From the NCBI GenBank assembly GCA_943704425.1, contig CALSCP010002736.1, positions 1 to 64,000 of the forward strand: a stretch of 64,000 bases of DNA, read 5' to 3'. Below are positions 2,091 through 42,462 of the stretch, one piece after another; within the stretch, counting starts at the first letter, position 1; each line of letters opens with the position of its first letter. Under the pieces are notes generated by a model. That model was given only the letters and a program-made list of their open reading frames with translations, was not told where the DNA came from and made no database searches. The position numbers and the translations under genes are program-made. The DNA comes from Ministeria vibrans ATCC 50519 (lineage: Eukaryota > Protista > Filasterea).

Positions 2091-6842
<4,752 letters not shown>

Positions 6843-23567: not shown

Positions 23568-25658
23568 CTACCTCCAACAGCACCACCACCACTTGAAAAG
23601 GTTGTGACGGGAGGTGGGACAGGTGCGCCTGAGGAGGCGGTAGAGAGCGATGATGCGGCAGGATGAATCTTCTTTTTGCTGCTCTTGTCGGTCTTGGCGG
23701 AGACAGGACGTTCGGCATTGGCAAGAATGCGCAAACACGTAATGGCGGCCTCCTTGCGAATGCCAGCCGAGTCATCCTCGAGACACACGACGACCCATTC
23801 ACGCAGGAAGACGGTGAGATCATGACTGCTGAGGTCAAATCTACCGAGGGTGCGCAGTGCAAGCATGATGGTCTCGTTGTCAAACGTCTCGGAGGTAGTG
23901 CCACCAGCACCACTGCTGGAAGAAAGCAAGAGATTGGCAGTGCGCGAGTCTGAGCCTCGCAGACCAATGGCGGAGGCGGGGCCTGAGCGGACGGCACGGG
24001 CACTTGCGTTCACAACGGCACTGACAACATTCGTGGCGGACGAGACGGGCATGCGACCAGACGTGGCGGGCCGACCGCCACTGCCGGTGCCGTTGGGCGG
24101 GATGGAGAGTCCCGGAAAGCGGTAGGGAAGACGCGAGAGAACCTTGGAGAGGATCTCGAGCAGACGTGCCTGAATGTTAGGCACCATGGCCTCGATGTTG
24201 TGTGCGAGGTCGCGCAGGGCCACAACGAGTGGCTCGCTGAGACCACTGGCAAACATGAGGTCGAGCAGGTCGTACATGCTGGTGGAGAGGCAAGGGACGG
24301 AGGGGACGGCACGCGCGAGCATGGAGACGCAGGCGAAGACGGGACCCTCGTTGGCAAGCTTGCTGCTGCCACGTTTCGGCGTGAGGCCGTCGCGCACGTT
24401 ATTGAGGATGCGTTCGTAGTAGGGAGGAGTGATGTCGGCGCCCAAGGCGAGAGCCATTTCGCCAAGAGCGTGGAAGGCGGAGGCGCGATGGGGTTCGCGG
24501 CGCACCACGTTGAGCAAGTGTTCCATGCACGAGTCGAGGTGGCCCGAAGCGACAAAGCCCTCGGGACTAAAGCTCGCCAGGGATGGAAGCAATGAGATGA
24601 CGGTGCGTTGCACAAGCGAGCTACGATGGTCCTTGTACTTCATGATGGTCTCGCAAGTGAACGCAAACTGCTCCATCATAAACTCGTCCTGGTGCAGCAA
24701 CAGTTCGCCCAGGGCCAGCAGCGAGCCGTGCACTGGATCGTCCTTGTTCGACTTGAGGCCTGTCAGAGCCTCCTCGTAGACGATTTTGGTCCATTGTGCG
24801 CGGATGCGCGGCTCGCGCTTTGCCGTGAGGGCCAGAGCAGCGCGCAACGCTGCAATGGCCCCCTCGCGCACCGTGTTCTTTTGGTCGCGCACGGCGACAA
24901 AGATACTCTTGAAGAACTGGCCGATGATGGTGTAGAAGAGGGTGGGGGCATTGGTCGCGAGCTGGTCGAGGACGAGCACCGCAGCGTACCGCTTCATCTC
25001 GTTACGATCGCCCTGCAGCCACTCGAGCGCCTCACGCGCCTCAAACTCGATAAACTCGGCCGTGAGCGTGCCGCCTACAAGGGCAAGGCGACCGACCGCC
25101 TTGGAGGCGACGACCATGACCTGTGCGTCGTTGCCAGGCAGCACATAGCGCAACTGGTTGGTAAAGCGAGCGATTTTTGTGGCGTTCTCTTCGCCCTCAA
25201 AGTCTATGAGCTCGTTGATGGCAAGCAGGCCGCCAATGCGCTCCGCAGTGTCTGTGCAGTGCACCATGTCGCTGATGCCGCGGTCAACGGCCTTCATAAA
25301 GGTCACAGCGTCGCCTGGATTTTCTCGGACGTGCGACGCAACATAGGCGCGCAGTTCCTGGGCTGCACGGACGCGCGCGTCCTCGTTGCTGTCGACAGAG
25401 AGGGCGGGGGTGAGCAGGGGGGTGTGGGGCGCGCGGCAGACGGGGGAGAGAGGGCCCAGGGGGGCCGGGGGAGAGGCGGGAAGCGATGCGGCTGCTCACA
25501 GCATCGAAAATACCCAAGAGAAAAAAAAGAAAAAAAAGGGAAAAAAAGAAGAAAAAAAGGGAGAGCGGAAGGGAAAGGGGGAGAAGTGGAACACACAGGT
25601 GTGAAGAGAAGACATACCGGCTCTTGAGCTCGCCGAGTAGGCGAGCAAGTTCTGCCAT
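18193..25658 (-). CDS. TOR: TOR kinase (HEAT repeats, FAT, FRB, kinase N-lobe); kinase C-lobe and FATC not found in window
   Basis: Exon 1 MAELARLLGELKSR (25658-25618) and exon 2 (25388-18193) with LRESPSPSLRSC, YAKALHYKELEF, WLQVIPQLIARI, FRB ILWHEMWHEGLEEASRLYFG...AWDLYYHVF, SKQRPRKL, FLLKGHEDLRQDERVMQLFGLVNTLL, then donor CAG|GTAAGA. No DRHPSN, DFG or FATC sequence seen downstream. Confidence 0.95.
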
Positions 25659-26077
25659 TCACGAGAAGAGAATAGAAACAAAAAAAAATAATGATCATTG
25701 ATTATCAGTAGAAGTTCGATGTGACCGCCAGAACTGTAAGATGAGCGCAGGCTGATGGTCGAGGTGACAAGTGTAGAGTCACTGGACACTGAGGGATCAG
25801 GGATGAGTGTGTGAGTGAAAAGGATCGGTTGGATGGGTTGTTGTTATTATATTCCTTTGGTCTATTAATTATTCATTCGATATTCAATATCATCAGTCGA
25901 GTGAGAGTCGACTCGACACTCGACAGTCGACAGTCATCAGTTTCTCACTCAGTGAGTGACACTCACTCATCACTGATCCTGAATAATAATATAAAAAATC
26001 GACATCTTTAGTGCTCTTTACTCTGACTCAGATCACTCATCACTCAGATCACTCAGTCTTTTTTTTGTTCATTTGCA
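25659..26077. promoter_or_regulatory. Putative bidirectional promoter (TOR/NADK) rich in GTCGAC, GAGTC and TCACTCA motifs
   Basis: Lies between divergent start codons; dense short repeats such as GAGTCGACTCGACACTCGACAGTCGACAGTC and GATCACTCATCACTCAGATCACTCAG. Confidence 0.5.
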
Positions 26078-27959
26078 ATGGCTGATCACAAGCGCGACAA
26101 AGCTTGCGATGAACTCCAGCCCGAAGGGTTTGCCTCGCCTCGCCGCCTGTCGGCCATGAAACGCTCGGGCAGCAGTGGGATCAAGGATGAGCATAGGTAC
26201 GTGAGTCGTGTGTTGAGACTGTTCTTTTGGGGTATTGTTGGACGATAACAATTTCAAAACCGACAAGGGTCGACACCCGCTGAGCCCAAAACGCCTTTTT
26301 GCTGCCTTCCCTGCAGGTCGCAGAGCGCCAACTCGATCCTACTGACCTGGACGGTGCCTCCCAGAAACGTGCTGGTCATCAAGAAGCACCGTGACAGCCG
26401 TGCGACCGACAAGTTTTTTGAGATTGTGTTGTGGCTGCTCGACGAGAAAGTGAGATGATAATTATTATCATAATTATTATAACAATGTTTCTTTTTTTGT
26501 TGTTGTTGTTGGCTCACACGTCTATGTTGTATGATTAGAAAATGATTGTGTATGCGGAAAATGGAGTCACGGAAGACGCGACGTTGCGCGACGACGGACG
26601 ATTTTCGGGTCTGATCAGTCGTCTGGAGATTCTCGACACTGCAAACATTCCGAAATCGGACGAAAAGGTGCGACAACGAGTGAACGTGTGTGTGAAAGAG
26701 AGGAAACGGGAAGAGAACGATCAGAGACGAGGTGGATAATAATGATTGTGGTGTGTAGGACATTGACATTGACTTTATCATTTGCATTGGGGGCGACGGA
26801 ACCATTCTGTATGCGTCGTCGCTGTTTCAAGCGGAAGTACCGCCCGTCATTAGTTTCCATATGGGTTCGTTGGGATTCCTGATGAACTTTGACGCGAGTT
26901 CGTTTCAGACGCCCATTGAGCGGATGATTGCGGGTCGAGCGAGCGCGACACTGCGCTCACGACTCGAATGTGAGTTCATCAAAGCACGACAGGTATCCTA
27001 TCGTACTAGTCAGACACAATGACGAATTGAGTATCCATGTATGCATTTGTATGTCTTTTATATGTGTTAGTCTGTGCACTGCGTTTCGCCATCACAGCAG
27101 CAATCACGTCGCGACAGCTTCTCCTCCTCTGCTCACGATACCATTTCCGCTCTTCCCTCGACGGAAAATGTCTTTCGCATTCTCAATGAGATTGTCATTG
27201 ATCGTGGCTCATCGTCCTATCTCAGTGATTTGGAAGTGTACTGTAACGGACGGCACATCACCACTGTCCAAGTAACTCGAAAAAAATCAATAGATTGACA
27301 GTGAGAAAATTGACAATGCGTAGGGTGATGGGTTGATTATTGCCTCATCGACTGGCTCGACGGCGTACTCGCTGTCCGCCGGCGGGCCTATGGTCCATCC
27401 CACTGGTAACTCATTTGCACTGTGTGTCGTGAGAATTCAATGAGTATTGCGCTACTTTTTTTCTTCATTCTTCTCTTTGTGCGTGTTACGTTTTTTTTTG
27501 TGTGCTTTGTGTTTTTCTTTCGTATTCTTTTCTTTTACATGACAAAATCGAAGAAAGAAAGAGGAGAATCTAGTGATGTGATTTACGCAATTGACTTATT
27601 CCTGTGTACGCACTCACTCTCACTACATCACTCACTGCTTACACTTTGGCGCAGTGAATGCGATTCTGCTGACCCCCGTGTGTGCGCACTCATTGTCGTT
27701 CCGGCCGATTGTGATGCCCGACACAGTGATTCTGCTTTTGGTGGTGTCGCCGCACAGTCGCGAGAGCGTGTGGGTGTCGCTAGACGGACGCAACCGTCAT
27801 GAACTCAACAAGGGCGACGCTATTCGCGTGCGCATGAGCAACTCGTATGTGCCAACCATGAACGACATTGATGACTCTGCCGACTGGTTCCACTCCCTCT
27901 CTTCCTGTCTCAATTGGAACACGCGCGTGCACCAGAGACCTTTTGAAGGCAAACTCTAA
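26078..27959 (+). CDS. NADK: NAD+ kinase; multi-exon
   Basis: [100 protein letters not shown]. Confidence 0.95.
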
Positions 27960-28369
27960 CATTGTACATTAACAAAAGAAGACGGTTTTTCATGTTCACA
28001 CATCCACAGTGTCTCGTTTTGCCAAAAGAGATTTTTGGTTTAAAGCGCCCGCTTCAACATAAATTACGTGTGCAGAATCCTTGTAGGCTTCGTCGAATCG
28101 ACATCGGGAGACAATGTTGGTGATCTTGCTGTGTTCTCGTGCTGACGTAGTTGCAAGACGCAGTTGCAGGTTCAGGATTGTTAAAGCGATCATATGTGCA
28201 TCCTGCAGCAAAACTACAAGAAAAACATTCTCTCCTATCACTCAACAACGTTCATGCGCAGATATAAATAATTATTTTAATTTTAATAATAATAATAAAA
28301 AAATATAATGATTAATAATAATAATAATTTAAGAAACAATAATAATAATAATAATAATAATATAATTAA

Positions 28370-28406
<37 letters not shown>

Positions 28407-28475
28407 TTATTATTATTATTAATTATTATACAGAAACAAATATTAATTTATAATAAATATTTTTTAACATTATCG

Positions 28476-29732
28476 TTATGATACGGTAGTATTGACAGTG
28501 GTTTGAAGGGAAAGCTCTCGAAAGGAAGAGTGAGGAGGGGGAGAGGGGAGGAGAGGCCAGTGGGGAGAGCGAGCCCATTGAGGAGTGTTGTGGAGCCAGA
28601 GGGAGGGCAGGGCGGAGATAAAGGCGTGCTGGGGCGCATGTGTATCACTGGTACTGCCAGTGGGGTCGTCGGCACGAGCAAATTTACGGGCGATGAGGAA
28701 ACAGTGAGTTGGAGTGCAGGGGAGTGAGTCGGTGTAGGCGAAGGAGGTGGCGTTCCGGAAGGAGGCTGCGTCGGCACCAAACTCAAAGGGATGCTGGTTG
28801 CTTGTTTTGCTCCAGCCCCAACGCGCGTAGGTGAGCGAAGCTTTCACGCGGAAGAATGACCCGAGGGGCATGGGAAAGGCGGCAAAAAAGTTTTGAAAGA
28901 TGTGCTCGGGTGTGGAGACGGAGAAGGACACGCCAAACTCAAAGAGCCACGACCGGTGCTCGCGCATAGCAATCTGTTGAGCATGAGTGCGTGTGAGGGC
29001 CGTCCACGAGCTGCCCTTGAGGAATTCGTGACGAGGTACGGGGGGGTTGAGATGATTTCCAAAGTAGCGCACGGCCCAGTCGAAGTTGCGCTGTTTGCCT
29101 GAGACAGGGTCCTCTGTGCCGGGCCCAAAGCTCTCGAGGAAGGAGGTGTTTCGATGGTAGATGAGAAGGTAGCGGTAGATGAAGGCAAACGACTGGAGCG
29201 GCAAACAGGACTCGGTGACGGTGAGAAACATCTGGTTGTGCGCATCGTCGGCCAGCGCCAGCTCAAGCAGCAGAAAGATGGCATTGGCCATGTCGCGGGT
29301 CTTGTAGCGCGTCTTGATGGGCTTCGGGTGGTTCACGACGGGGTTGTCGTCGCTGAGGCGCGACGCAAAGGGGACGTTGGGCGCCGTGTGGGCGTACAGA
29401 GTGTACAGCTCGCGTGGGACGCCGCGGAAGAAGGCGCGCCACGCATGCGGCAGTTTGTGCGTGCCGTTCTTGGCCAGAAACACAAATGCGATTTTGCCAT
29501 AGCGGCGCGCAAAGTCGGCCGTGAGCGCCTCCTCGGTGGGCGTCAGGGCAGCATCAGCAGCAGCAGCAGCGGGGGTGGGGGCGGCGGGGGGCTCCCGTGG
29601 CAGCGATCGCAGAGCGACTGTCACCGGACGAAGTGTGGACGGCGCTGGCGGCTGACTCCACCACAAGACGCCCCCGACGAGTAAGATGCACACGGTGGCG
29701 GCAAGTATCCTACTGACATGAAGGCGGATCAT
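28476..29732 (-). CDS. Core-2/I-branching (GT14-like, DUF266/BC10-type) glycosyltransferase, type II membrane protein, apparently single exon
   Basis: N-terminal TM anchor and Pro/Ala stem; KIAFVFL, W..FF...LYTLYAH, LLELALAD..NQMFLTVTESCLPLQSF..IYRYL, KGSSWTALTRTHA, PEHIF, LTYARW, HPFEF, FLIARKF. Confidence 0.85.
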   Translation of the reverse strand: MIRLHVSRILAATVCILLVGGVLWWSQPPAPSTLRPVTVALRSLPREPPAAPTPAAAAADAALTPTEEALTADFARRYGKIAFVFLAKNGTHKLPHAWRAFFRGVPRELYTLYAHTAPNVPFASRLSDDNPVVNHPKPIKTRYKTRDMANAIFLLLELALADDAHNQMFLTVTESCLPLQSFAFIYRYLLIYHRNTSFLESFGPGTEDPVSGKQRNFDWAVRYFGNHLNPPVPRHEFLKGSSWTALTRTHAQQIAMREHRSWLFEFGVSFSVSTPEHIFQNFFAAFPMPLGSFFRVKASLTYARWGWSKTSNQHPFEFGADAASFRNATSFAYTDSLPCTPTHCFLIARKFARADDPTGSTSDTHAPQHAFISALPSLWLHNTPQWARSPHWPLLPSPPPHSSFRELSLQTTVNTTVS

Positions 29733-29797
29733 AATAAAAATTTGAATTGAATGAGTAGGAAAATTGAATGAGTAAGTTTACAAATCAAATATTTGTC

Positions 29798-30386
29798 ATG
29801 TCGTTCAAGCGATCCAGAAGTGATTCCAGTGGTTCAGCCTCGTGCAAAGCTGGGGGTAGCGAGGAGCCCGGAATGCTGCAGGTGGCTGAAAAACACTGTC
29901 GCCGGTACGAAAAGTGCTCTGATCACTCTGGCGACTGTCGTTTCTCTCGCTGACCGTCTTGCTGGGGGTGTGTTTGTTTGGCGGGTGGGCGTGGGCGCTG
30001 GGGGTGCTTAGGTTCATTCAAGGGTGGAACCGGGCGCGTCGCACGGACGGCATTCGGTGTTCGCAAATGACGTACGTGTCATCTCTGTCTCTCTCTCTCT
30101 TACTCTAACGTTCCTTCTCAACTCTCACCATTTACAATAATAATAGAGGAGGCCTGACTAACGTGCTCATTAAATGTGATTTGGTTGATGAGGACCTGGC
30201 TGACGTGACAGAGCGGCGCGTGCTGGTGCGTCTGTACGGCAAGAACGTCGAAGTCTTCTTCGACCGAAATCTCGACCAAGTGCTGTTTGTGACGCTTGCC
30301 GAGCGCGGCTTTGGCCCTAGGCTGTACGGGCTCTTTCCAGAAGGACGCATTGAGCGTAAGATGTCCACGCGAGTCCTCTCGTGCAG

Positions 30387-30417
<31 letters not shown>

Positions 30418-31706
30418 GCCCTTGACTGTTATGTGTGTGGCTTTTGACTGTTATGTGTGTGGCCCTTGACTGTTATGTGTGTGGCTCTTGACTGTTATGT
30501 GTGTGGCTCTTGACTGTTATGTGTGTGGCTCTTGACTGCTATGTGTGTGGCTCTTGACTGATATGTGTGTGGCTCCTGACTACTTTGTGTGTGGCTCTTG
30601 ACTGCTATGTGTGTGGCTTTTAACTGCTGTGTGTGTGGCTCTTAACTGCTGTGTGTAGAGTTCATTGACGGCCGAACGCTTTGCACCAATGACCTTTGCC
30701 AGCCCGCCATAAGCACAGCCATTGCGCAAATGGCTGCTCGAATCCACGCACTGGTCGTGCCGCTTGACAAACGACCCAATGTCGAGCGTGACATTCTCCG
30801 GTGGATGCAACTCGCAAAGGAAACGGTAAGACTTGCGAAAGCCAGCACAAGTGCACCATTGTGTAACGTTTCATTAGGGTTCTTCCCTTGCGAGTGAATT
30901 TCTGAGTGATTCTGACGATATTATGCGATTTGTGCGGGAAATTGTCTCTTTGGCACACACTAAAACGGTCTTTTCTCACAATGATCTTCAAGAGGGTAAA
31001 ACAATCACAAAGTGTTTGCACATGAGAGTCACGCTTCTTTTGGTTTGTTTTGTTGTTAGGAAATATTATATTGACGTCGGATGAAACGTCAGAAGAAGTT
31101 CAATTGACAGTCATTGACTATGAATACGGGTAAAAAGAAACGCACGATCAAACAATACTCTAAACTACTTAATGTCGGTCTATTATCGTTTGTTTTATTC
31201 AGCCGGTACAACTTTGCGGGTTTTGACATTGCAAATCACTTTTGCGAATGGACTTATGACTATTCCCACTCTGAATATCCCTTTTTCACATTCTCTCCCG
31301 ATCAATATCCCACTTTGGAACAGGTAACGTCGAAAACCAAGGTTCAAATTGAAACGCATTGTCAAACAGCAAAAGCGGTTCATTGAAACGTACCTGAACG
31401 AGAGCCAAGAGTTAAGGGGAGAGGAGGAGAGGGAGCAAGTGAGCACCGATGAGATTGCCTTGACTGTGAGTGATGTGATGCGCTTTCGCATTCTCTTGGA
31501 ACTCTTTTGGGGCATATGGGGCATTTTACAGGTATTCAAGCTGATTGATAATCACGCTTACTTGTCCAAACTCCACTCCATTGTTCTTCTCTTGTTGTTG
31601 TTTAGGCCCAGAGTTCAGTGATTGTGTTTGGGTATAAGAGTATGCTCAGACGCGATTGAGCAACTATGTCCGATTGAGAAGAGAGTTCGAAGAGAGTGAC
31701 AAATAA
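29798..31706 (+). CDS. Choline/ethanolamine kinase; multi-exon, apparent 1-nt frameshift in last exon
   Basis: GGLTN, [30 protein letters not shown], Brenner motif FSHNDLQEGNII, IDYEY, FDIANHFCEW, YPTLEQQ, LFWGIWGILQ. Confidence 0.9.
30410..30656 (+). repeat. 22-bp tandem minisatellite (TTGACTGTTATGTGTGTGGCTC) x ~11 filling a choline kinase intron
   Basis: Directly visible head-to-tail copies with point variants and no spacers. Confidence 0.92.
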
Positions 31707-32000
31707 TGAATGAAAAATTGTGCAATTTTATTTCTTTTTCTGAAAAATAGACACAAAACTCAGAAATTCCAATGAGAGAGCAAACGTGTTATAATGTAAT
31801 AATCATAATAATCATAATAATTATTAATAATAATTATTGTTATTCTTATTATTATTATTATTATTATTAATAATTATTGTTATTATTGCTATTATTGTTA
31901 TTATTAGTATTATTATTATTATTATTATTACTATTATTATTATTATTATTATTATTATCATTATGTTAATGTGTGTGAAAAAAAAACACAATGTATTGTT

Positions 32001-34037
32001 CTACTTGAGCTCAAAGAGCCCCCAAGTAAGAGGACCATCGGGAGAGCGCAGGAGCTTCAGGGCCTCCTCAAAGGAGTATTCCTTCTGCTCGGACTGGTCT
32101 TGCTTCTTGACCGTCTTCTTGGCATAGCGGAAGAACTTGGCGTTGGCCTTGGTGTCCTCGTCAAGCGCCGCCAGAAAGGCCTCCACCGAGAAGGGGTCGT
32201 CGAACTCGCCGCCGTCGTCATTGCCGTCGATCACGGCGCACTTGCGTACCTCCTTGACAATAACGTCGAGCGTGATTTCGTCGAGTTCGTGCGCGAAGAT
32301 GGTGCATGAGAACGGCTCAACCTTCTTAATCGACTCGCCCTATACACCCACAAGTGTCACTCACTCCCTCTCAAAACCCCAACCCCAAACTCAAACTCAA
32401 CCCAAATCGACTTACCTGCAGCGACACCAGCTTACTGCGCTTCATTGGGTTGACGTTGTCGCCACGCCACCACGTCGCAATGTACTTTGTGCGGCGGAAC
32501 TGCCCAGTCCCAAAGCCCATGCGCACAATCCCGTACAAAATCTCATCGTCTTTGAGCCATTCGCGCATCTCCTCCACCGACAGTGTTCCACCATTAAAGA
32601 AGTCCATTTTGTTGTCGGGCGTCGGCTTGAACAACGCCCAGTTAAACGGCCCCCGTGGCTTGCGGATCTGCTCCATACACTGGTCCGCCGTAATGTCGCC
32701 CATCTCAATCGCGGTCAGTCGGTGTCCATCGCCCGCCTCAATCGACGCGCCCGCTGCCGCCGAAGATGATTGCACCATCTGTACGCATAAAATAGATGAG
32801 TAAAAATAAGCAGAGTGAGGCAAAGTAATGCATACTAATACAATGATAGAGAAAGTGAAACAAAGTGATACATACAGAGAGAAGCAAAGTGATACATAGA
32901 GCGAGTGAAGCAAAGTAATACATACAGAGAGAAGCAAAGTGATACATAGAGAGAGTGAATCAAAGTAATACATAGAGAGAAGCAAAGTGATACATAGAGC
33001 GAGTGAAGCAAAGTATTACATACAGAGAGAAGCAAAGTGATACATAGAGAGAGAAGCAAAGTGATACATAGAGAGAGTGAAGCAAAGTAATACATAGAGA
33101 GAGAAGCAAAGTGATACATAGAGAGAGTGAAGCAAAGTAATACATAGAGAGAGAAGCAAAGTGATACATGGAGCGAGTGAAGCAAAGTAATACATAGAGA
33201 GAGAAGCAAAGTGATACATGGAGCGAGTGAAACAAAGTGATACAGTGAGAGAGAAGCAAAGTAATAAATCAAAAATACATATAGAGAGAGTGAAGTAAAG
33301 TGATACATAGAGAGAGTGAAACCAAAGTGATAGAGAGCATATGTGTGTATATATGTGTATGAGTGCACATAAGACGTGCGCCATCGCATCCGCCCACCCC
33401 CCACGCCATCTGACCTTCTGATAGTCTCTCTTGAGGCTCTCAATGGAGAACTCTCCGTTGTCCGACACAAACACTGTCTTGAGCTCCGTCAGAACATGCT
33501 CGATTGAGCAGTCCTCGCGGTCGTCAATGGTCACCTGGCCGTTCACGTCGCCCACAGCACTCTTGACAGCACCTGTGGACGTCCGTGTCAGTGTGTGCGG
33601 TTTCAATCACAAAATCAAACCAGAAAAACCAAAAACACAAAAGAAAAAAGAGCCAAATGGGACAATAAGAGACGGACATACGGCAGAAGAGGCGCTTACC
33701 CAGGTTTGTGTTGACACGGGCCTTCTTGATGCCCGACACATTGGCCCCTTTGAAGACAACCTAACAACAACACATCCAATCAATTATTATTATGGTTATT
33801 GTTATCACATTCCATAATTATTGTGTGATTCGGACCATCAGGAGCTTTGTGCGCTGAAACGTGCCGGAGCCAAGAGTAAACCGCAACAGTCCAAACTGAA
33901 CGGCGTCGTCGCTGAGACGGAGCAGTTGACGTGCACAACATGAGATCACAAATCAGATCTTTTTTTGGTTCTTACTTGAGGTGTCCGCGCATCTCATCGA
34001 TGCCGCCCGAGCCCGTTCCAATAACTTTCATAGCCAT
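32001..34037 (-). CDS. Tandem ADF-H (coactosin/drebrin-like) actin-binding protein, circularly permuted; 6 exons
   Basis: Unit 1 starts mid-domain: MKVIGTGSGGIDEMRGHLNDDAVQFGLLRF..G....RTKLLMVVFKGANVSGIKKARV. Unit 2 is complete: QIRKPRGPFNWALF...EEMREWLKDDEILYGIVRM..G....RTKYIATWWRGDNVNPMKRSK. The C-terminus EEALKLLRSPDGPLTWGLFELK* corresponds to the domain start. Confidence 0.85.
32805..33340 (+). repeat. Intronic minisatellite GAAGCAAAGT(G/A)ATACATAGAGAG with alternating subunits
   Basis: About 20 copies; variant of the CAAAGTGATA family. Confidence 0.9.
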
Positions 34038-34444
34038 AGTAGAATAAGTCGTGAGAGTGGGAATGCGCTAGTTGAAATGGGAATATCAAAATTTTATTGT
34101 TTGGAATAATTTGATTTTGCCATTTTGGAAGATATGAATAAATAAGCCAAAACAATTACAGCTCTTGATCCTCTATTTATTTTTTCTTAATACAAATTTT
34201 ACAACAATACAACATCACACTGCTTCCGCGGACTGCCATTAACTTGAAAACTCGCTCAAACTCGTATTACGGGAATGATTGGAAAATAATGCCCAAGAAA
34301 AAAATACTTCGAATGATTGTCTTACTCGTTCATACAACAACGGAAACACATTGAATACAAGTACAACAATACGTTGGTTTTGATCGCTGTACAACAACAA
34401 ACAACTCTCTTCTAGACATTCCACTCGGCAAACTCGACATGGCT

Positions 34445-35353
34445 TCACTCGGCGTGCGGGACTCTGCGCCTCAGCACAAACCCGTGTGCGGTCCGCCGCA
34501 CATCAGGATCACCCGGATCCCGCGGAAACACCGGTGGTCGGTTCATATCCGTAAACAGTCGCTCAGCAAAGAAATAGTGTGGAGCTAACTCGGCCAACGG
34601 AAAAAACGCCTATAGAGGGAAGACAAAACCCAATTCTTCAGTCCATATTTCACGCACATTCTATAGCATTACCAAATCTCGATCAATATGCTTCACTGTG
34701 TGATGACAATACCCAAACAGAATGATTCCTCCCTCTGCCAAGAGCCCACTCATCGACTCCAGAAAGTACTCTACAACACGAATACAATACAATGAGTGCG
34801 CACTTTCTCCATTCATCCTCTCTCCTCTTATTCCTACTGTGCTGATTGTGGTTGAAAACCAAATCACTCATAATAATCACATCAAACCGACCGTGCTTGC
34901 TGCGAAGCTCTTCAATATCGCGACCACATCGATGCGCCTAAGTCGATTAAGGGTTGTATTAATAATAATAATAACATTATTATTATTAACTGATAGTGCA
35001 CTATGACTGCTGTGTATACCTCAACAAAAATGCGCGACTTGTAAGGCTCCTCTGTCACAACCTGTGCCATGTTTTCTTTCACGGCATTTACCAGTAACTC
35101 CTCGGGATATTCTGCTGCCACCACCTTTTGCGCTGCAACGAGAGTGATCGGTAGTTAGTGCATCTGACTCATATCCGACTCGCGTTCGACTCTCTCCTCT
35201 TACCACCGGAAAAGAGCGCCACCAAGCTTGGAAGAGCTGCCCCAGCTCCAATTTCAATCACACTCTTGCCCAATACCAACTCTTTGTGGGCATCAATCCA
35301 TTCGGCGAGTGAGTAGGATGAGTTTGAGATGGTGCTAAAATGATCAATGTCAT

Positions 35354-35389
<36 letters not shown>

Positions 35390-35606
35390 ACACCGCATTG
35401 CTCACGCTGCCCTCTTACTGTGCATAAAGAGGATGCCACTGTGCCAGGGTGAAGGTGAAGCTAGCGGGCGTGCCCTCGCTCACGTCGCGCGTCTGTCGTG
35501 TGAACACGCGTGTGATCGCCGGCGCCCACGGCACCTCCACCTCTCCGGCAAACAGCCCGGCAATGCCGTCCTCTGCACCCTCCTCCCCGCCAGTCTCGTC
35601 AGCCAT
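34445..35606 (-). CDS. EFM7/NNT1-like protein methyltransferase (methyltransferase family 16); multi-exon
   Basis: HPLYAQ, LVLGKSVIEIGAGAALPSLVA (SAM motif I), VVAAEYPEELL, DLVFNH, and C-terminal FPRDPGDPDVRRTAHGFVL resembling Nnt1/Efm7. Confidence 0.75.
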
Positions 35607-36001
35607 GGTCCGCCCAATTCACAGAATACCAACAATGAACAAATATCTAATGACTAATTATAAGTAATTGTGAGATGTGAGTTCGGAAGTGATCAAAATA
35701 CATCGGTTTAATTCATTAATGAATTATACATTCTTCTTCTTTTTCTTCTTCAATACAAACGTATACAATCATTATCTCTATCTATTCAACTTGCCACCAC
35801 TAAAATATTAAAATAATAATAATTATTATCGAAATCAGTCAATCACCAAATTCAAACTCTATCACGTCACGAGTCACTTTATCACAGTCTTGACAATTGG
35901 CACGAAAAGAAGAAACGAAGGTGACACATTGAAAATACTATTATTCAACGTCATGATAAAAAAAATTACTATTACGATTATACAATAACGCGCTGTTTTC
36001 T

Positions 36002-36451
36002 TTAGTGGTCTGCTTTGGAATCGTAGAACGAACGCGCATTTCGCTTCCGTGCGTTGAAGCGTTCACGGTCCGTCTTGAATGAGAGGGACGCTGTAAATGG
36101 TTGGTTGTGGGAGTCGGGTGAGAGCGGAGCAAGGACAGCGACGGCTGGAAGAGAGAAACGCAACTGACGATCGGGTGGCTGAACAGAGTCTGGAAGAGAA
36201 TTGGTTTGGGATGGCGGGAGGGCACTACGTGGTGCGGTGGGGTGGTGGGGTGGCGGTGCAGTGGGTTGGATCGTGACGGGTGCATTTGCTTGGTTGATTG
36301 CGTTGACTAGTCGTCGCGTGAGTTTCTTGTGGAGAATTACCTATACATACATTTCAAGACCAGAACAATTTAGTACTCTCTATCACTTTGATTCTCCTCT
36401 CTATCACTTTGTTTGTTCTCTCTATCACTATTTTTCTTCTCTCTTTACTCC

Positions 36452-36496
<45 letters not shown>

Positions 36497-37293
36497 CTTG
36501 TTCGATCTCTCTCTTTTCTCCCTCCTCTCTCTCTGAATAATTTGCTTCTTCCCCCCCTCTCTGCTCTCATTGTGTTTACTTCGTCTTCCGTCCAAGGTGT
36601 AGACCCAAAGCGAGCACGCTCATAGTTACTGATGAATGTGTCTGCGTCGTACCGGAGGGCCTTGAACCCCGCTCCCGAGTTGAACACAGACAGCCTACAC
36701 CTCATTCAGCAAACGTCCCTTTTGTCTCGATGACCACCACCCACGACCCCCCACCACTCAGACAACACATACCTTGAGACAAGGGCAAGCATGTAGCCGC
36801 GCAGTGACTGCGTGCGGGGCAGCGACGCCGCAAAGTGCCGGTCGTAGTCGTAGACGGTCGACAGAAGCAGATCCGCCGTGTCCAGCACCTCGTCGACAAA
36901 CGACCGCTCCGTGCCGCGACTCGTCATCTTCCAATTGCGTATCCGCTCGACCGTCTGCGGCGCCGGCTGCAGCCGTAACCGAGCATTGCTGGCAAGCTGT
37001 TCGCGGATGGGCACACACTTCTGCCCTAACGCCCCCATGTCGCCCCATGCCAGCGGCATACACTCCGTCGTCTTGCGCCGAAACATCTTGAACATGCGAC
37101 GCTCCCGTGCACCAAAAATGAGAAACAGAATCCCCCCCTGGACGAGCGTAGACGCGAGACAAGAGGGAGAAGCGTCGCTCGTTGAGTTTTCACAAATATA
37201 AAACAAAGTATTATTATTATTGTCGTGTAGCAATACCGTCACGCCGTAGACGATGACAACCAAAAGGATCTCAGCGGTCTCAAAGCTAGCCAT
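36002..37293 (-). CDS. NICE-3 / C1orf43-like protein; multi-exon
   Basis: N-terminal TM ILLVVIVYGVT|GGILFLIFGARE, followed by a basic stretch, SLRGYMLAL and FISNYERARFGSTPWTEDE; parallels human C1orf43 (VLVMAYGSLVFVLLFIF..., FRSYLLDL, YETARYG) as recalled. Confidence 0.65.
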
Positions 37294-38365
37294 AGCCAAG
37301 AAAACAAAAAAAAAATTGAAATGACTAATTTCGGATCTAATGTAAATGAACAAGCAAACCTTCGAAGTTTGAAAAGTAGTCAGTGGTCACTGGTCAATTC
37401 TCAAAACTACTTAAATAGTTGATAGTGCGACTCCACCCATCCATTCGCCATGTCGGACCATAGAGCATCGCAGAAGACCGTCGTCGTCGTGCAGGAGCAC
37501 AGAGGGTTCTGCCAGCGCCACCATCTGTGCATGCTCTCGCGTGGCGCCAAGCGGGTATGTAGCGCGCCCTCGCCCACCGCCCCTCCTTGTGCCCCACCCC
37601 CAGCGCGCCACCCGCCGTCCACTCACTCACCAGAATTCTTTTTGTCACTCACAAACTTATTTTTCGAACAAAAGTCGCAAGAAAAATAGCTTTAACTCCT
37701 TCTTTCTCGCTTCGCCGTTCCCTACACACGTGCAGTTCAACGTCGCCCTCCCCACCTCCTCCCTGTCGCGTTCCGCAACAGTGTCCGTTGGACTTTTGCG
37801 CTTTCATCTATTTCAAGAAAAACACTCCCCGTTCCCCTCCTCACCGCCTGCGCCGCCCCCCGGCCTGCCTTGTCTTGTCTAGTGTGCTGGAGGCGATGTT
37901 GGTGGCAACAACTGGTACTTCTTTGCCTGGATTCTCACGGTATGGCCAAATGGAGAGAGAGAGAGAGTGAGAGTGAGAGTGAGAGTGTGAGAGTGTGAGA
38001 GTGTCGCGATTGCCCATCTAAGCGGATTTGTGCTCTCATTTAGGTGCCGCTTGATCTCGTTCTCTTCCTCCTCATGATGCTTTTCTGGATGTTCTACTAC
38101 CTGTTTAAGGGCATCCACAACTGCTGCGTAAGACCATGCTCGCTCCCACTCCCAGTCCTAACCTCACACACTACACACACTCTATGCTTATAGTCAAACA
38201 AGGAAGTTGCGCGTGCGTCCGGTCCCGGTCCCTAGGCAACCACCTTTCTCTCATCCGAACCTGTATCCACCCCGCCACCCAAAACTCCCTCTCCTTTTAG
38301 TACAACAAGCTCGTTACAATAATAATTATTATTATATCCTCCTGTCAAAGCCCCTGTTCTGTCTG

Positions 38366-38659
38366 TTACCGTTGCATCTTGCGTCCCATAAACTCGCCCG
38401 TTCCCCCCACATCCACAGTGCTCACCTGCACTTGCATCTTCCTCTCCAGCTTGGAAAACAGCTGTTGCTCAAACGGGTGTGATGTGACGACATAGCGGAT
38501 CGTCACATCGTTCGTCTGGCCAATGCGGTGCGCCCGATCTTCAGCTTGAATCAACTAACAAAGAGAGACAAATTGCTGTTCAGCGACTCTCACAGTCACG
38601 AAATCCGCACTCAATCACACTAAAAACACACTGAACCCCATTCAATCACACTCAATATC

Positions 38660-38702
<43 letters not shown>

Positions 38703-40812
38703 CCTCTCAATCATTTTGTTCCTTTCTCCCCCCGCTCTCCCTCTCTCTCTTTGTTTCTTTCTCCTCTCTCTCAGACCTGTCCAACGTTCCAATAGGCCTC
38801 AGCAAAGAACACACTGGCAGCCGCATGCAAAGTCAGTCCCACACCGGCCGCAGTCAATCCCAACAGCCCCACTCGAACCCCACTCACACTACTCACACTC
38901 CCCTCCGTCTTCTCCTTCTTCTTCTTCTCCTTCTTCTTCTTATTCTTCTTCTGAGACGTGTCCTCCGAGCTTTCTTGTAGTGGCGTTTGAAACTCATCAC
39001 AGAGCGCCTGTCGTTCCTGTGCGGGTGTTGAGCCGTCAATCCGAATGTACCCAATCTTTTTTTTTTCTAAATGTGCTCCAATCGCATCCAAAACCTTACA
39101 ACAAAACAGCAACGACAACAATACAAAACTCAATACAATAGCATCTTCTTCTTGTTCTCATCTTTTTGATTCTTACAGACTTGTGGTGGGCAAAAATCAA
39201 ATGCTTTCGGGTATCGTCCGGATCAACAAAAACAACTTCATCGAGATAGCGGGTAAACGCAGGTAGCTTGACCTTCCCCAGCGTAGCATAAAGATGTGTT
39301 AGGGCGGTGTAGAGGGTCTGCTGGGCGGGTGAGAGAGACGCTTTGGCGGACGAGAGCAGAGAAAAGTCGGAGTCGGAGAAGAAGAGTTCGCCCACAGCGG
39401 AAGCGGGAGGGGACGTAGACGAGCGACCCGATTCGATTGTGAGCTGTTTGCGCGCCTTGTCGATGGCTTCGGAGCATTTCTCAAGAACCTTCTTGTCCGA
39501 TTTGCGCTCGACGTCCACAAACAGGGGCACGCGGGTCTTTGCGGGGAGTTGAGATAGCACCCGGGACTTTTGGCGGCGGATCATGACAGCGCTACGGAGA
39601 ATCCACTGGAGTTCGTGGAGGTGAGAGGCACCAGCGAAGGACCAGGGCCCCTGGTAGAAGTGTTTGGTGTAGTGAAAGGCAGGAAGACGGGTGCCGGCGC
39701 AGTAGTGAACGCCAAAAGCAATGCGGTCGGAAAACAGCTGTGGCTGGACGGCATGCACGAGGTTAAAGAGTTCAATGGGGCGCGAGAGGACGGGAGTCCC
39801 CGTAAGGAGGATGCGATGGAGGGCGTGCTCGGTGAGACGCAGGATGGCACGGGTGCGCTGCGCCGTCGCCGACTTAATATAATGTGCTTCGTCGATGATG
39901 AGCGTGCGTCGTTGGGCCTCGCACAGTGCTTCAATGTTGTTCACTGCCAGGCCGTACGTGATGATGCAGACGGGCCGTGTCAGGTCCAGCTTTGACGATG
40001 AGCTCACCACTGCAATGTCACTCTCAGGAATGCCCAGAACCGCCATGAGCTCGTGCTTCCACGTCGCCGACAGCGACATGGGCGTCACAATCAGCAGCGG
40101 CCAGTCCGAGTGAAAATGCTGCGCAATCATGGCCGCCTGGCGCGTCTTGCCCAGTCCCATCTCGTCGCCCAGCAACACACAGCCGTTGGCACGGATGCCC
40201 CGAAGCACGCCCACTCGCTGAAAGGGCATCAACGAGCTTAAGAGTGTCTCATCCATGCCCAGCGCTCTCAGACCGGCCGTTGCCGCCCCGCCGTCCTCGT
40301 CGTCACTGCCGTCCAGCAACGGCACCGACAGACCCGTCAGCACTTCCAGTGGCGTCGCTGCCGGCCCCACCTCGGAGACAGGGCGAAACGCCGAGGCGAC
40401 AAGGTCGCTGTGGCCAAGTCTCATGAGCTCCTGCGACGCCATGACGCGCAGCGACGTCGGATGCGGCAGGATGAAGTCAGCGTAGTGATCGGCAAGCATT
40501 GCCATCGCGGGCACTACCGACTGGGCCGTCAGCGTCGACCCTGCCGCCACGCTGCTGTGCTGCGCAAACAGCCGGTGCACCGTGGCTGCTGCTGCCCCTC
40601 GGCCCACGTTGGACAGCCGCCATCCGCTCGAGTCCTTCAGCAGACCAAAGCGTATTCGACCTCGTCTGTCGATTGCAATGACTGTTATGATATATTTACC
40701 GCTCAACAACAGTGTCGTACTTTTGGCCCGTGTGCACAACGGCTATCGAACGAGAGTACAAACTTCGAGCGGCACGCGCCCACTCGAACAGTTTGGCGTT
40801 GTGCTGAGCCAT
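38366..40812 (-). CDS. SMARCAL1/ZRANB3-family SNF2 annealing helicase; multi-exon
   Basis: LMPFQRVGV, LLGDEMGLGKT, WPLLIVTP, IIDEAHYIKS, LLTGTPVLSRPIELF, MIRRQKSRVLSQLP, LIFAHH, IRIDGST, GVGLTL, QAEDRAHRIGQ. First exon joined by a 34-nt GT-AG intron; the 3' end could extend further. Confidence 0.88.
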
Positions 40813-40933
40813 AAACACAGAAAATATTTACTTTTGAGTTTTGGGATTGGGTTTGGATCAAAAATATAAACTATTTGTTTTCATGGTGGTGTACTGTCAC
40901 ATATGAATTTATCACTCTATCGTCACCATACAA

Positions 40934-42462
40934 TCAGACTCCCGTAACGCGCGAAATCATCTTGGTCAGCGCGGCCATTTGAAAACCAATCTTGGACGCA
41001 TAGTCTACGCCAGTGTAGCCCCACCAGTCAAAACACGCTAAATGAGAGAGGGGGAGGGAGAGGGAGGGAGAGAGAAAGAGACGGTTAGGCATTATGTACG
41101 ATTCTTGATTGGGTTCACTGCATAAGTGAGTGTACCTTTTGGATTGAGGGTGGTTGAGTGTGCCTACAAAGCGATAAAGTGTGAGTGCAACCGTATTCGT
41201 TTTTGTTGTTTAGCTGACCTGCGGGTAAAGGATAATGAGATGGTTTGCCTCTGCAATTTCATTGTAACCGGCATGAGCAGTGAAAGAGTCGTTGATAAGC
41301 GAATAGGTCATAAGACAACCGTGAAAGGCAAGGTGGAGACGACACTCAACTAAGAGAAGAGAGAGGAGAAAGAGAATAAGAGGAGAGAATTTCTTTATTC
41401 TTCTTAATTTAACTCTTTGGTTACCTTGCCCGGACTTGCAATCGGTTGGAACGTAGATTGAACCGGTAAAGTCAAACCCATATTCCGTTGGTTCCTAAAA
41501 CGAACAATATAATAATAATAATAACTTTTTACTATTTTTCTGTTGTTATTATTATTATTCTTACGCTCAATGCAAAAAACTCCGACTGATCAAAGTACAT
41601 CAACTACAAAAGACGCCATGAACGCAACATACAAGTGATACAGCCCGCAACTGGCAATGAGTCCATTTACACACACACACACAGGCACAAACACACATGC
41701 ACCACACACACACACACACACACTCAGTCATGTTTACGTTTTCGGGCTTGGACGGAACGGACGGATCCATCTGACCGTAAATCGTCGTTAAAAGCGCATA
41801 CGCTGCGTCGTAATCGCAGTTGTTGATATAAGGAGAGCCCAGATAGTTGCAGGGATTGCCAAAAGACGCAGTGATGAAGGCGTGCTCGGATGCGATGGAG
41901 AATTCACTCGTGACATTGGCCGAGAAGGCTTCGTAGTACTTGACGAGCTTCTTACCGACTCCCTGGTGGACAACCGAGTCCTGCGTGCCCGAGAAGACAT
42001 ACACCGGGGCGTTCTTGAGATGCTCGACGGGGTCAATGGTGCGTGTGGTCGATGCGGTTGTGCGTGTGACGCTCGCAAGATAATCAACATCAATTTGCGC
42101 CGGCTTGCTCATGCACGCGCCCAGGGCGATCTCCACGTTCGCCTGCGCACAGTAGTAGGGGCCCCCTGCACACGTCGACAAGGTGCGCAGCAAACAAGGC
42201 CGTTAGAATTGCGTTGTGGAAACCCATTCAAAGAAAGAGACGATCACAAAAACTTTTTCGCACCTGCAATAACTCCTGCACCATAAACAGACGCCGAATT
42301 CGCCACATGGTACTGCACAGCCATGTACGCACCCGCTGAGATCCCAGACACGCTTGTTTTCGCAGCATCAACAAAATATTTTTCCAGCGGCGGCGCAGTT
42401 GCGTCCACTACCGCTCCAAGCACAGCGCATAGTAACAACAAACGACTGAGACGAGCGACCAT
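40934..42462 (-). CDS. Secreted poly(3-hydroxybutyrate) depolymerase-like esterase (type II catalytic domain); multi-exon
   Basis: Signal peptide; early lipase box VSGISAGAYMA, GVIAGGPYYCA, Asp in GTQDSVV, His in SEHAF, PYINNCDYD, IYVPTDC, LHLAFHGC, AGYNEIAEANHLIILYPQ, CFDWWGY. Confidence 0.88.

Follow-up and report, generated by a model that had tools for sequence, protein, structure and literature searches.

Permuted order of ADF-H segments in a two-unit protein of Ministeria vibrans and its relatives

Introduction

A minus-strand gene at positions 32001-34037 of a 64,000-nucleotide stretch of DNA from Ministeria vibrans (the whole stretch is referred to below as the window) raises the question of how a protein that opens in the middle of an ADF-H domain could complete that domain. 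A preliminary description, made from the letters of the window, had read here a spliced protein that begins mid-domain, contains one complete ADF-H unit and ends in a tail resembling the beginning of such a unit, and had proposed that the split domain is completed either within the chain (in cis) or by a neighbouring molecule (in trans). The permuted order is conserved in the protein and its relatives. We consider it reasonably probable that the gene encodes a member of an old ADF-H class, kin to coactosin, Abp1 and drebrin, that closes in cis into a two-domain unit and acts as a two-headed binder of actin-filament sides.

Results

Order of ADF-H elements in the window protein

Judged by profile matches, the chain consists of an ADF-H unit without helix 1 and strand 1 (unit 1), a complete ADF-H unit (unit 2) and a tail of 25 residues equivalent to the missing pieces. 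The protein starts at the equivalent of the second ADF-H strand, and the normal order of elements, with helix 1 and strand 1 first, is found in unit 2 and not in unit 1. Pfam Cofilin_ADF (PF00241) matches the fifth of the six coding exons over profile positions 6-90 with 32.1 bits (E 1.1e-7; gathering cutoff 22.4 bits), the short unit 1 exons being too small to score singly. Both units retain the conserved basic segment V-x-(K/R)-(G/A/S)-(K/R). The motif FSIES/FSVEA is common to both as well, as had been noticed in the preliminary description; it proves to be the start of the last helix of each domain, and not the linker element for which it had been taken.

Unit 2 heads and tails of nine family members were combined into a profile of the helix-1/strand-1 piece (the head-piece profile). 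In the window protein it has two matches only, residues 156-171 (E 1.4e-6) and residues 330-351 (E 1.6e-7), which lie within two segments:

32623-32694, minus strand: head piece of unit 2 (helix 1 and strand 1), residues 148-171, ITADQC...NWALFKP; head-piece profile.
32004-32078, minus strand: C-terminal tail, residues 328-352, YSFEEALKLLRSPDGPLTWGLFELK, the helix-1/strand-1 piece that unit 1 lacks; head-piece profile.

In a six-frame scan of positions 24000-42000, the same profile matched only 32623-32670 and 32007-32072, all other matches having E > 1. A head piece hidden in introns or flanks was rejected, as this profile detects no third copy over some 8-10 kb to each side of the gene.

Homology of the tail to the piece missing from unit 1

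Tail and unit 1 were compared with unit 2 by profile-profile alignment (hhalign), using the columns of the family alignment (alignment A3) with unit 2 as target. Unit 1 alone aligned to columns 30-165 (E 3.7e-37), and the tail alone to columns 4-29 (E 4e-11). With the tail moved ahead of unit 1, a full-length and collinear match was obtained over columns 4-165 (157 columns; E 4.2e-44), in which the gaps near the junction amount to just one or two residues. By these comparisons the tail is homologous to the helix-1/strand-1 piece absent from unit 1. This had been claimed in the preliminary description, and the full-length match that it had anticipated for the rearranged sequence was likewise obtained with the family profiles. 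In searches of PDB with the family profile, the drebrin-like protein 1x67 was matched by the tail (profile positions 350-373) at its residues 18-41 and by unit 1 (profile positions 8-108) at its residues 46-140, and coactosin-like protein was matched by unit 2 at residues 8-131.

Conservation of the permuted order in a large family

A profile of nine full-length members was searched against 1.84 billion cluster representatives and retrieved 1757 of these at E <= 1e-3 and 307 at E <= 1e-30. Full modules, 116 in number and drawn from many eukaryotes, were examined with the head-piece profile, C-terminal modules of myosins included; none carries a head piece ahead of unit 1. In 93 of the 116 there are two head pieces and no more, namely the head of unit 2 and the tail, and 22 show a single head-piece match at the threshold used. 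Homologs score 64-96 bits against Pfam Cofilin_ADF, in two stretches apiece. For all homologs with a reported unit 1 match, the first stretch begins at 24-31 of the 125 profile positions, and it ends at 104-125; the second, unit 2, starts at 2-5 and ends at 112-125. In one set of full-length homologs the two stretches extend from 27-29 to 124-125 and from 3-4 to 125. The Pfam starts in homologs and the head-piece profile agree with the mid-domain opening, the single complete unit and the head-like tail read earlier from the window.

Alignment-based statistics refer to 93 aligned members, none longer than 600 residues. Of these, about half have <=15 residues ahead of the first strand, and in about a third the chain ends <=5 residues past the tail strand. 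Linker 1, between the two units, has a minimum length of 12 and a median of 26 residues; for linker 2, between unit 2 and the tail, the values are 8 and 19. The tail tryptophan (W351; W355) is conserved in at least 90% of the members.

The preliminary description had seen a single gene; it is one of two paralogs in this genome and a member of a large, old family. The diverged paralog (contig C1831 of the same genome, G000:C1831 about 3276-5440, plus strand; locus L003 about 292-2456, 2165 letters) is roughly 40-60% identical to the window gene, exon by exon. Its termini match those of the window protein, with the start MSALKVIGIGSGG / MSALKVIGIGSGGVDEM and the end ...NWGLFAYE*, ...SVEEAVKLIRADNAYNWGLFAYE followed by a stop. 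The paralog introns contain GT-rich and GA-rich simple repeats. Database searches also returned complete transcript ORFs (open reading frames) of other organisms with the same ends.

P0013 (Codosiga) and P0097 stand nearest to the window protein, with 45.8% and 45.2% identity respectively. Choanoflagellate members come from Codosiga hollandica and Didymoeca costata; further named members are from Cafeteria roenbergensis (a bicosoecid), Polarella glacialis and other dinoflagellate-like transcripts, and Pyramimonas sp. (a prasinophyte). Euglenozoa are represented by Flectonema neradi and by an "EG_transcript" entry that probably belongs to Euglena. With members in Opisthokonta, Stramenopila, Alveolata, Chloroplastida and Euglenozoa, the family may be of great age, and gene transfer may have contributed to its distribution. 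Named members are annotated at source as hypothetical or generic ADF-H proteins, and an Atlas feature search gave generic Cofilin_ADF clusters only.

Three database entries deserve separate mention. P0021 and P0025, labelled Symbiodinium microadriaticum and Symbiodinium sp. KB8, share 90%-identity clusters with Cafeteria roenbergensis proteins, which suggests Cafeteria contamination in the assemblies behind them. P0092 (532 residues) bears the source name 'flagellar biosynthesis GTPase FlhF'; Pfam finds Cofilin_ADF only, and the name looks like a mis-annotation.

The whole module also occurs at the very C-terminus of two myosins with motor and MyTH4 domains, P0108 (2407 aa) and P0118 (2596 aa), one of which includes an FKBP domain. 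In these fusions unit 1 still begins at profile position 31, although upstream sequence could have supplied the missing piece. Some members have weak PH matches after the module and one has Calx-beta domains; there too unit 1 starts at profile position 31. Pfam detects no domain in the N-terminal extensions of 170-220 residues that some members carry.

Gene structure and transcript

The window gene comprises an ORF of 352 codons plus stop, assembled from six minus-strand exons between 34037 and 32001, and all of its introns are GT..AG. Expression was checked by comparing contigs of four public runs (X1, X5, X6 and X17) with positions 31300-34900. The features of the gene are as follows:

34038-34081, minus strand: 5' untranslated region, to the extent of X1 contig collinearity; in-frame TAG at 34070-34068; the X1 record covers 33976-34081.
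33976-34037, minus strand: coding exon 1, with ATG at 34037-34035; first strand and short helix of unit 1; joint 33911/33976 in X1, X5 and X6.
33836-33911, minus strand: coding exon 2; unit 1, with the conserved G-x-G-x-F-x-R-x-K motif; gene model, RNA contigs and alignment.
33700-33760, minus strand: coding exon 3; unit 1, with the basic V-S-G-I-K-K-A-R segment; gene model, RNA contigs and alignment.
33415-33572, minus strand: coding exon 4; end of unit 1 including the last helix (from FSIES); gene model, RNA contigs and alignment.
32779-33414, minus strand: intron 4 (636 nt); joint 32778/33415 in three RNA runs.
32416-32778, minus strand: coding exon 5; inter-domain linker and first two thirds of unit 2; Pfam Cofilin_ADF and RNA contigs.
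32001-32339, minus strand: coding exon 6; remainder of unit 2, variable linker of 8-75 residues, tail and stop codon (32003-32001).

All five intron joints are present at the exact model positions in the X1, X5 and X6 contigs, which stem from three studies, and the 352-residue spliced reading of the preliminary description is identical to the ORF of this six-exon model. Contigs of these three runs represent the exonic half of 31300-34900 only; X17 covers nearly all of it, as DNA would, and none of the five joints is present in its contigs.

An X1 contig of 1155 letters covers the entire mRNA (34081 to 31995) and stays collinear with the genome across the in-frame TAG at 34070-34068, 11 codons ahead of the ATG, and again past the TAG stop at 32003-32001 into the 3' flank. 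Because the contig is collinear through both in-frame stops, the ORF is no longer than modelled at either end of the X1 transcript. An upstream exon supplying the missing piece and a downstream exon continuing into a further domain, the two objections that had been foreseen, are thereby answered. Splicing from the GT at the stop codon (CTCAA/GTAGAA, which resembles the exon 1 donor) was rejected on the same grounds, the X1 contig being collinear beyond it.

Neighbouring genes leave little space for further exons, as had been remarked of the short flanks. The convergent plus-strand neighbour has its poly(A) site at 31747, and the transcript contigs of the upstream minus-strand neighbour extend down to about 34311.

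An artefact of the gene model or assembly, be it an overlooked 5' exon or third domain or a tandem array that was collapsed, is in our judgement extremely improbable. The one feature that could be quoted in its favour is a run of 34 letters in the X1 contig, past 34081, that has no match in the adjoining genome (junction 34081/34082); their single genome match, 28/30, lies in a GC-rich stretch of another contig, C978 (L006, G000:C978:20383-20412). The run was rejected as a spliced leader or 5' exon, since the junction lacks an AG acceptor and is followed by an in-frame stop before the ATG; the 5' end of the X1 contig is probably chimeric. The transcript moreover runs through the terminal stop, the same ends recur in the paralog and in the complete transcript ORFs of many species, and no further head piece is present across 18 kb.

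Some observations on the surroundings of the gene may be added. The convergent neighbour (31365-31747, plus strand) has a 74-nt intron at 31530-31603. An (ATT)n microsatellite of about 48 units, at 31797-31964, fills most of the space between the two convergent 3' ends. Intron 4 contains a tandem repeat at 32850-33266 with a unit of about 25/50 nt (AGAGAGAAGCAAAGTGATACAT...), the summed contig depth of which in the DNA-like run is about 20,000 compared with about 300 in the flanks; the motif is therefore very abundant in the genome. Runs of AAAGTGATAGAGAG, like those of the intron 4 repeat, are found in an intron and the 3' flank of the paralog (L003 about 2040-2200 and 3060-3126).

Predicted packing of the tail

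AlphaFold models were made for the two nearest homologs, P0097 and P0013, with the 93-sequence family alignment. Confidence is given as the predicted local distance difference test (pLDDT) and the predicted template modelling score (pTM):

P0097 model: pLDDT 90.2, pTM 0.63; tail helix 334-341, tail strand 351-356; tail block-mean pLDDT 90-94.
P0013 model: pLDDT 91.2, pTM 0.77; tail helix 339-347, tail strand 355-360; tail block-mean pLDDT 90-97.

Helix 1 and strand 1 of unit 2 have their counterpart in the tail in each model, and unit 1 has the secondary-structure order of unit 2 minus the first helix and strand. Unit 2 of the model (residues 151-275) superposes on residues 8-131 of coactosin-like protein with Z 14.2 and a root-mean-square deviation (rmsd) of 2.6 Å over 124 residues; the values for drebrin and HIP-55 are Z 14.1 and Z 13.8, and coactosin, drebrin, Abp1 and cofilin together span Z 12.7-14.2. 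The VIA-align and Foldseek rows cover almost only unit 2, unit 1 and the tail being hardly represented.

The chain can be written B1 - linker - A2B2 - linker - A3, where A stands for helix 1 plus strand 1 and B for the remainder of the fold. Given the homology of A2 to A3 and the similar lengths of the two linkers, a fold is in principle possible in which A2 completes B1 over linker 1 and A3 completes B2 over linker 2, with the short A2-B2 hairpin as a hinge. This pairing is nevertheless very unlikely: A2 and B2 fit coactosin as one rigid body in the superposition just given, and A2 is joined to B2 by a short loop from one strand to its neighbour (E169-173/E180-185 in P0097; E185-189/E196-201 in P0013), as would be expected of the canonical hairpin.

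For a complementation test, unit 1 (residues 1-125) and tail (residues 322-358) of P0097 were submitted as two separate chains together with three controls. The pair scored 0.70 compared with 0.03 for the best control, with a partner pLDDT of 71-72 and at least 95% of contacts in agreement between runs. The same mark is reached by 51 of 78 solved complexes and by 2 of 108 mismatched pairs. In the best-supported contacts, tail residues 351-355 are flanked by residues 5-10 on one side and 27-31 on the other, the two segments that form the first two strands of unit 1. The tail helix is predicted to lie on residues 62-74 and 121-122. Both placements are as expected of ADF-H strand 1 and helix 1. 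The tail is thus predicted to pack on unit 1 with its strand inserted between the first two strands, and the prediction, made on a homolog 45% identical to the window protein, goes the way of the preliminary description, which had named a C-terminal peptide that does not pack there as evidence against itself.

These results bear on a reading in which the tail has no structural role for unit 1, being a relic of a lost third domain or a separate motif, and in which unit 1 is truncated and perhaps a non-functional half domain. The tails are short, and the 22 members with one head-piece match only could be counted on its side. We nonetheless give this reading very little credence: the tail tryptophan is conserved, the tail is strictly kept from one supergroup to another and in the two paralogs, which speaks for selection, the model confidence and the complementation score are both high, and a six-strand fold without an inner strand would probably be unstable.

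A more serious contender is completion in trans, in which each molecule would lend its tail to unit 1 of a neighbour, giving domain-swapped dimers or open head-to-tail chains. The two-chain complementation test supports it as well as it does closure in cis. Both termini lie in one hairpin loop, a geometry favouring swapping, linker 2 is down to 8 residues in some members, and the module sits at the end of myosins, which may themselves pair. On the other hand, closure within the chain is entropically favoured with linkers of 8-75 residues, and the monomer pTM of P0013, the higher of the two models, suggests a fixed two-domain arrangement. Cis closure is also geometrically plausible because both linkers are long in every member examined. 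On balance we regard completion in trans as rather unlikely; if true, the chains could bundle actin filaments or template along them.

Comparison with known ADF-H proteins

By Pfam score, and by a fold judged on the homolog models, the protein belongs to the ADF-H/cofilin superfamily. All nine PDB sequence matches of the family profile at E <= 0.01 are drebrin-like protein, coactosin or drebrin, with no cofilin, twinfilin or GMF among them, and these profile matches place the family in the coactosin/Abp1/drebrin branch.

Unit 2 of the homolog model has the same predicted fold as coactosin (COTL1), the superposition covering 124 of 130 residues. Coactosin chains are matched at E 3.8e-8 to 2e-7, and the motifs G-x-G-x-F-R-R-x-K and V-x-R-G are common to both. 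Coactosin, however, is a single domain of about 140 residues in normal order, whereas two domains, one of them permuted, are present here, and identity is just about 18-20%.

Abp1, drebrin and drebrin-like proteins (HIP-55, 1x67; 5y1z) include the best PDB sequence match (1x67, E 1.4e-12), with fold Z of 13.8-14.1. Proteins of this group have one N-terminal ADF-H domain of normal order, followed by helical or proline-rich regions and SH3. In contrast, no helical or proline-rich regions and no SH3 were found by Pfam in the exons and homologs of the present family.

Twinfilin resembles the window protein in having two ADF-H folds in a chain of about 350 residues and a short C-terminal tail, and Foldseek lists 7ccc_B. 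Both twinfilin domains are in normal order, whereas unit 1 is N-terminally incomplete here. The twinfilin tail binds capping protein and is not part of the fold; the present tail is by sequence homologous to an ADF-H head piece. Identity with twinfilin was rejected, as there is no sequence match at E <= 0.01 and the two-domain superposition is poor (rmsd 23 Å).

Natural permutants such as the swaposins, as compared with saposins, are thought to arise by tandem duplication and trimming of the ends. The near-seamless junction of tail and head in the present family is as expected of a tandem array cut in a loop. Unlike the simple B-A arrangement of such permutants, a complete unpermuted copy stays inside, and the resulting B-AB-A resembles a preserved intermediate.

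Discussion

How, then, could the split domain be completed? In the closed arrangement that we favour, A2B2 would fold as an ordinary ADF-H domain, and the C-terminal A3 would fold back on B1, its strand entering between the first two B1 strands and its helix lying on the helical face. B1 and A3 would form a second, circularly permuted ADF-H domain, and the two flexible linkers would tie both domains into a closed two-domain unit. The arrangement would most likely have arisen through permutation by duplication, from a tandem ADF-H array both ends of which were cut in the strand-1/strand-2 hairpin, leaving one intact copy inside; this origin is proposed because the junction of tail and unit 1 is nearly seamless in the profile alignment.

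As to function, the two coactosin-type heads would bind the side of actin filaments at fixed spacing, and the module would work alone or, at the ends of myosin tails, as an extra actin anchor. Coactosin and Abp1 bind the side of F-actin without severing it. Side-binding is suggested because these nearest relatives bind F-actin sides, the basic segment is kept and the module is fused to myosin tails.

Several points weigh against this interpretation. The case for actin binding comes from family resemblance and the myosin fusion only. The tail-only match to 1x67 is weak by itself (4.6 bits). All structure predictions were made on homologs 45-46% identical to the window protein, none on that protein itself. 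The models may reproduce a memorised ADF-H fold, so that a pass shows likeness and not binding. A monomer model can place the tail only in cis and does not discriminate between cis and trans, and the full-length models are not informative on whether the tail touches unit 1 or another surface.

A bolder proposal, which we put forward as a speculation and think improbable, is that the family is a sixth ADF-H class, possibly as old as the last eukaryotic common ancestor, with permutation as its working principle. The tail would exchange between cis, giving a closed and soluble form, and trans, giving head-to-tail chains; the resulting polymer along or between actin filaments would serve as a switchable bundler or ruler, on myosin tails too.

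Reviews distinguish five ADF-H classes, namely cofilin, twinfilin, Abp1/drebrin, coactosin and GMF (PMC3499766, PMC5297645). The preliminary description had known of no class like the present one, and no paper on a permuted ADF-H/cofilin domain was found in the searchable literature, which leaves out most subscription journals. Myosins with cofilin or ADF-H tails are unmentioned in the myosin surveys searched. The family is an uncharacterised ADF-H class.

Its recognition would add a widespread class to the five known ones, overlooked since it is missing from the usual model organisms. It would provide a clean natural circular permutation with an intact copy nested inside, which bears on how permutations arise, and an unexpected, testable twist in the structure of a much-studied domain. 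For lineages in which the origin of animal filopodia and microvilli is investigated, it would also supply a putative new actin-binding module, either free or fused to MyTH4 myosins.

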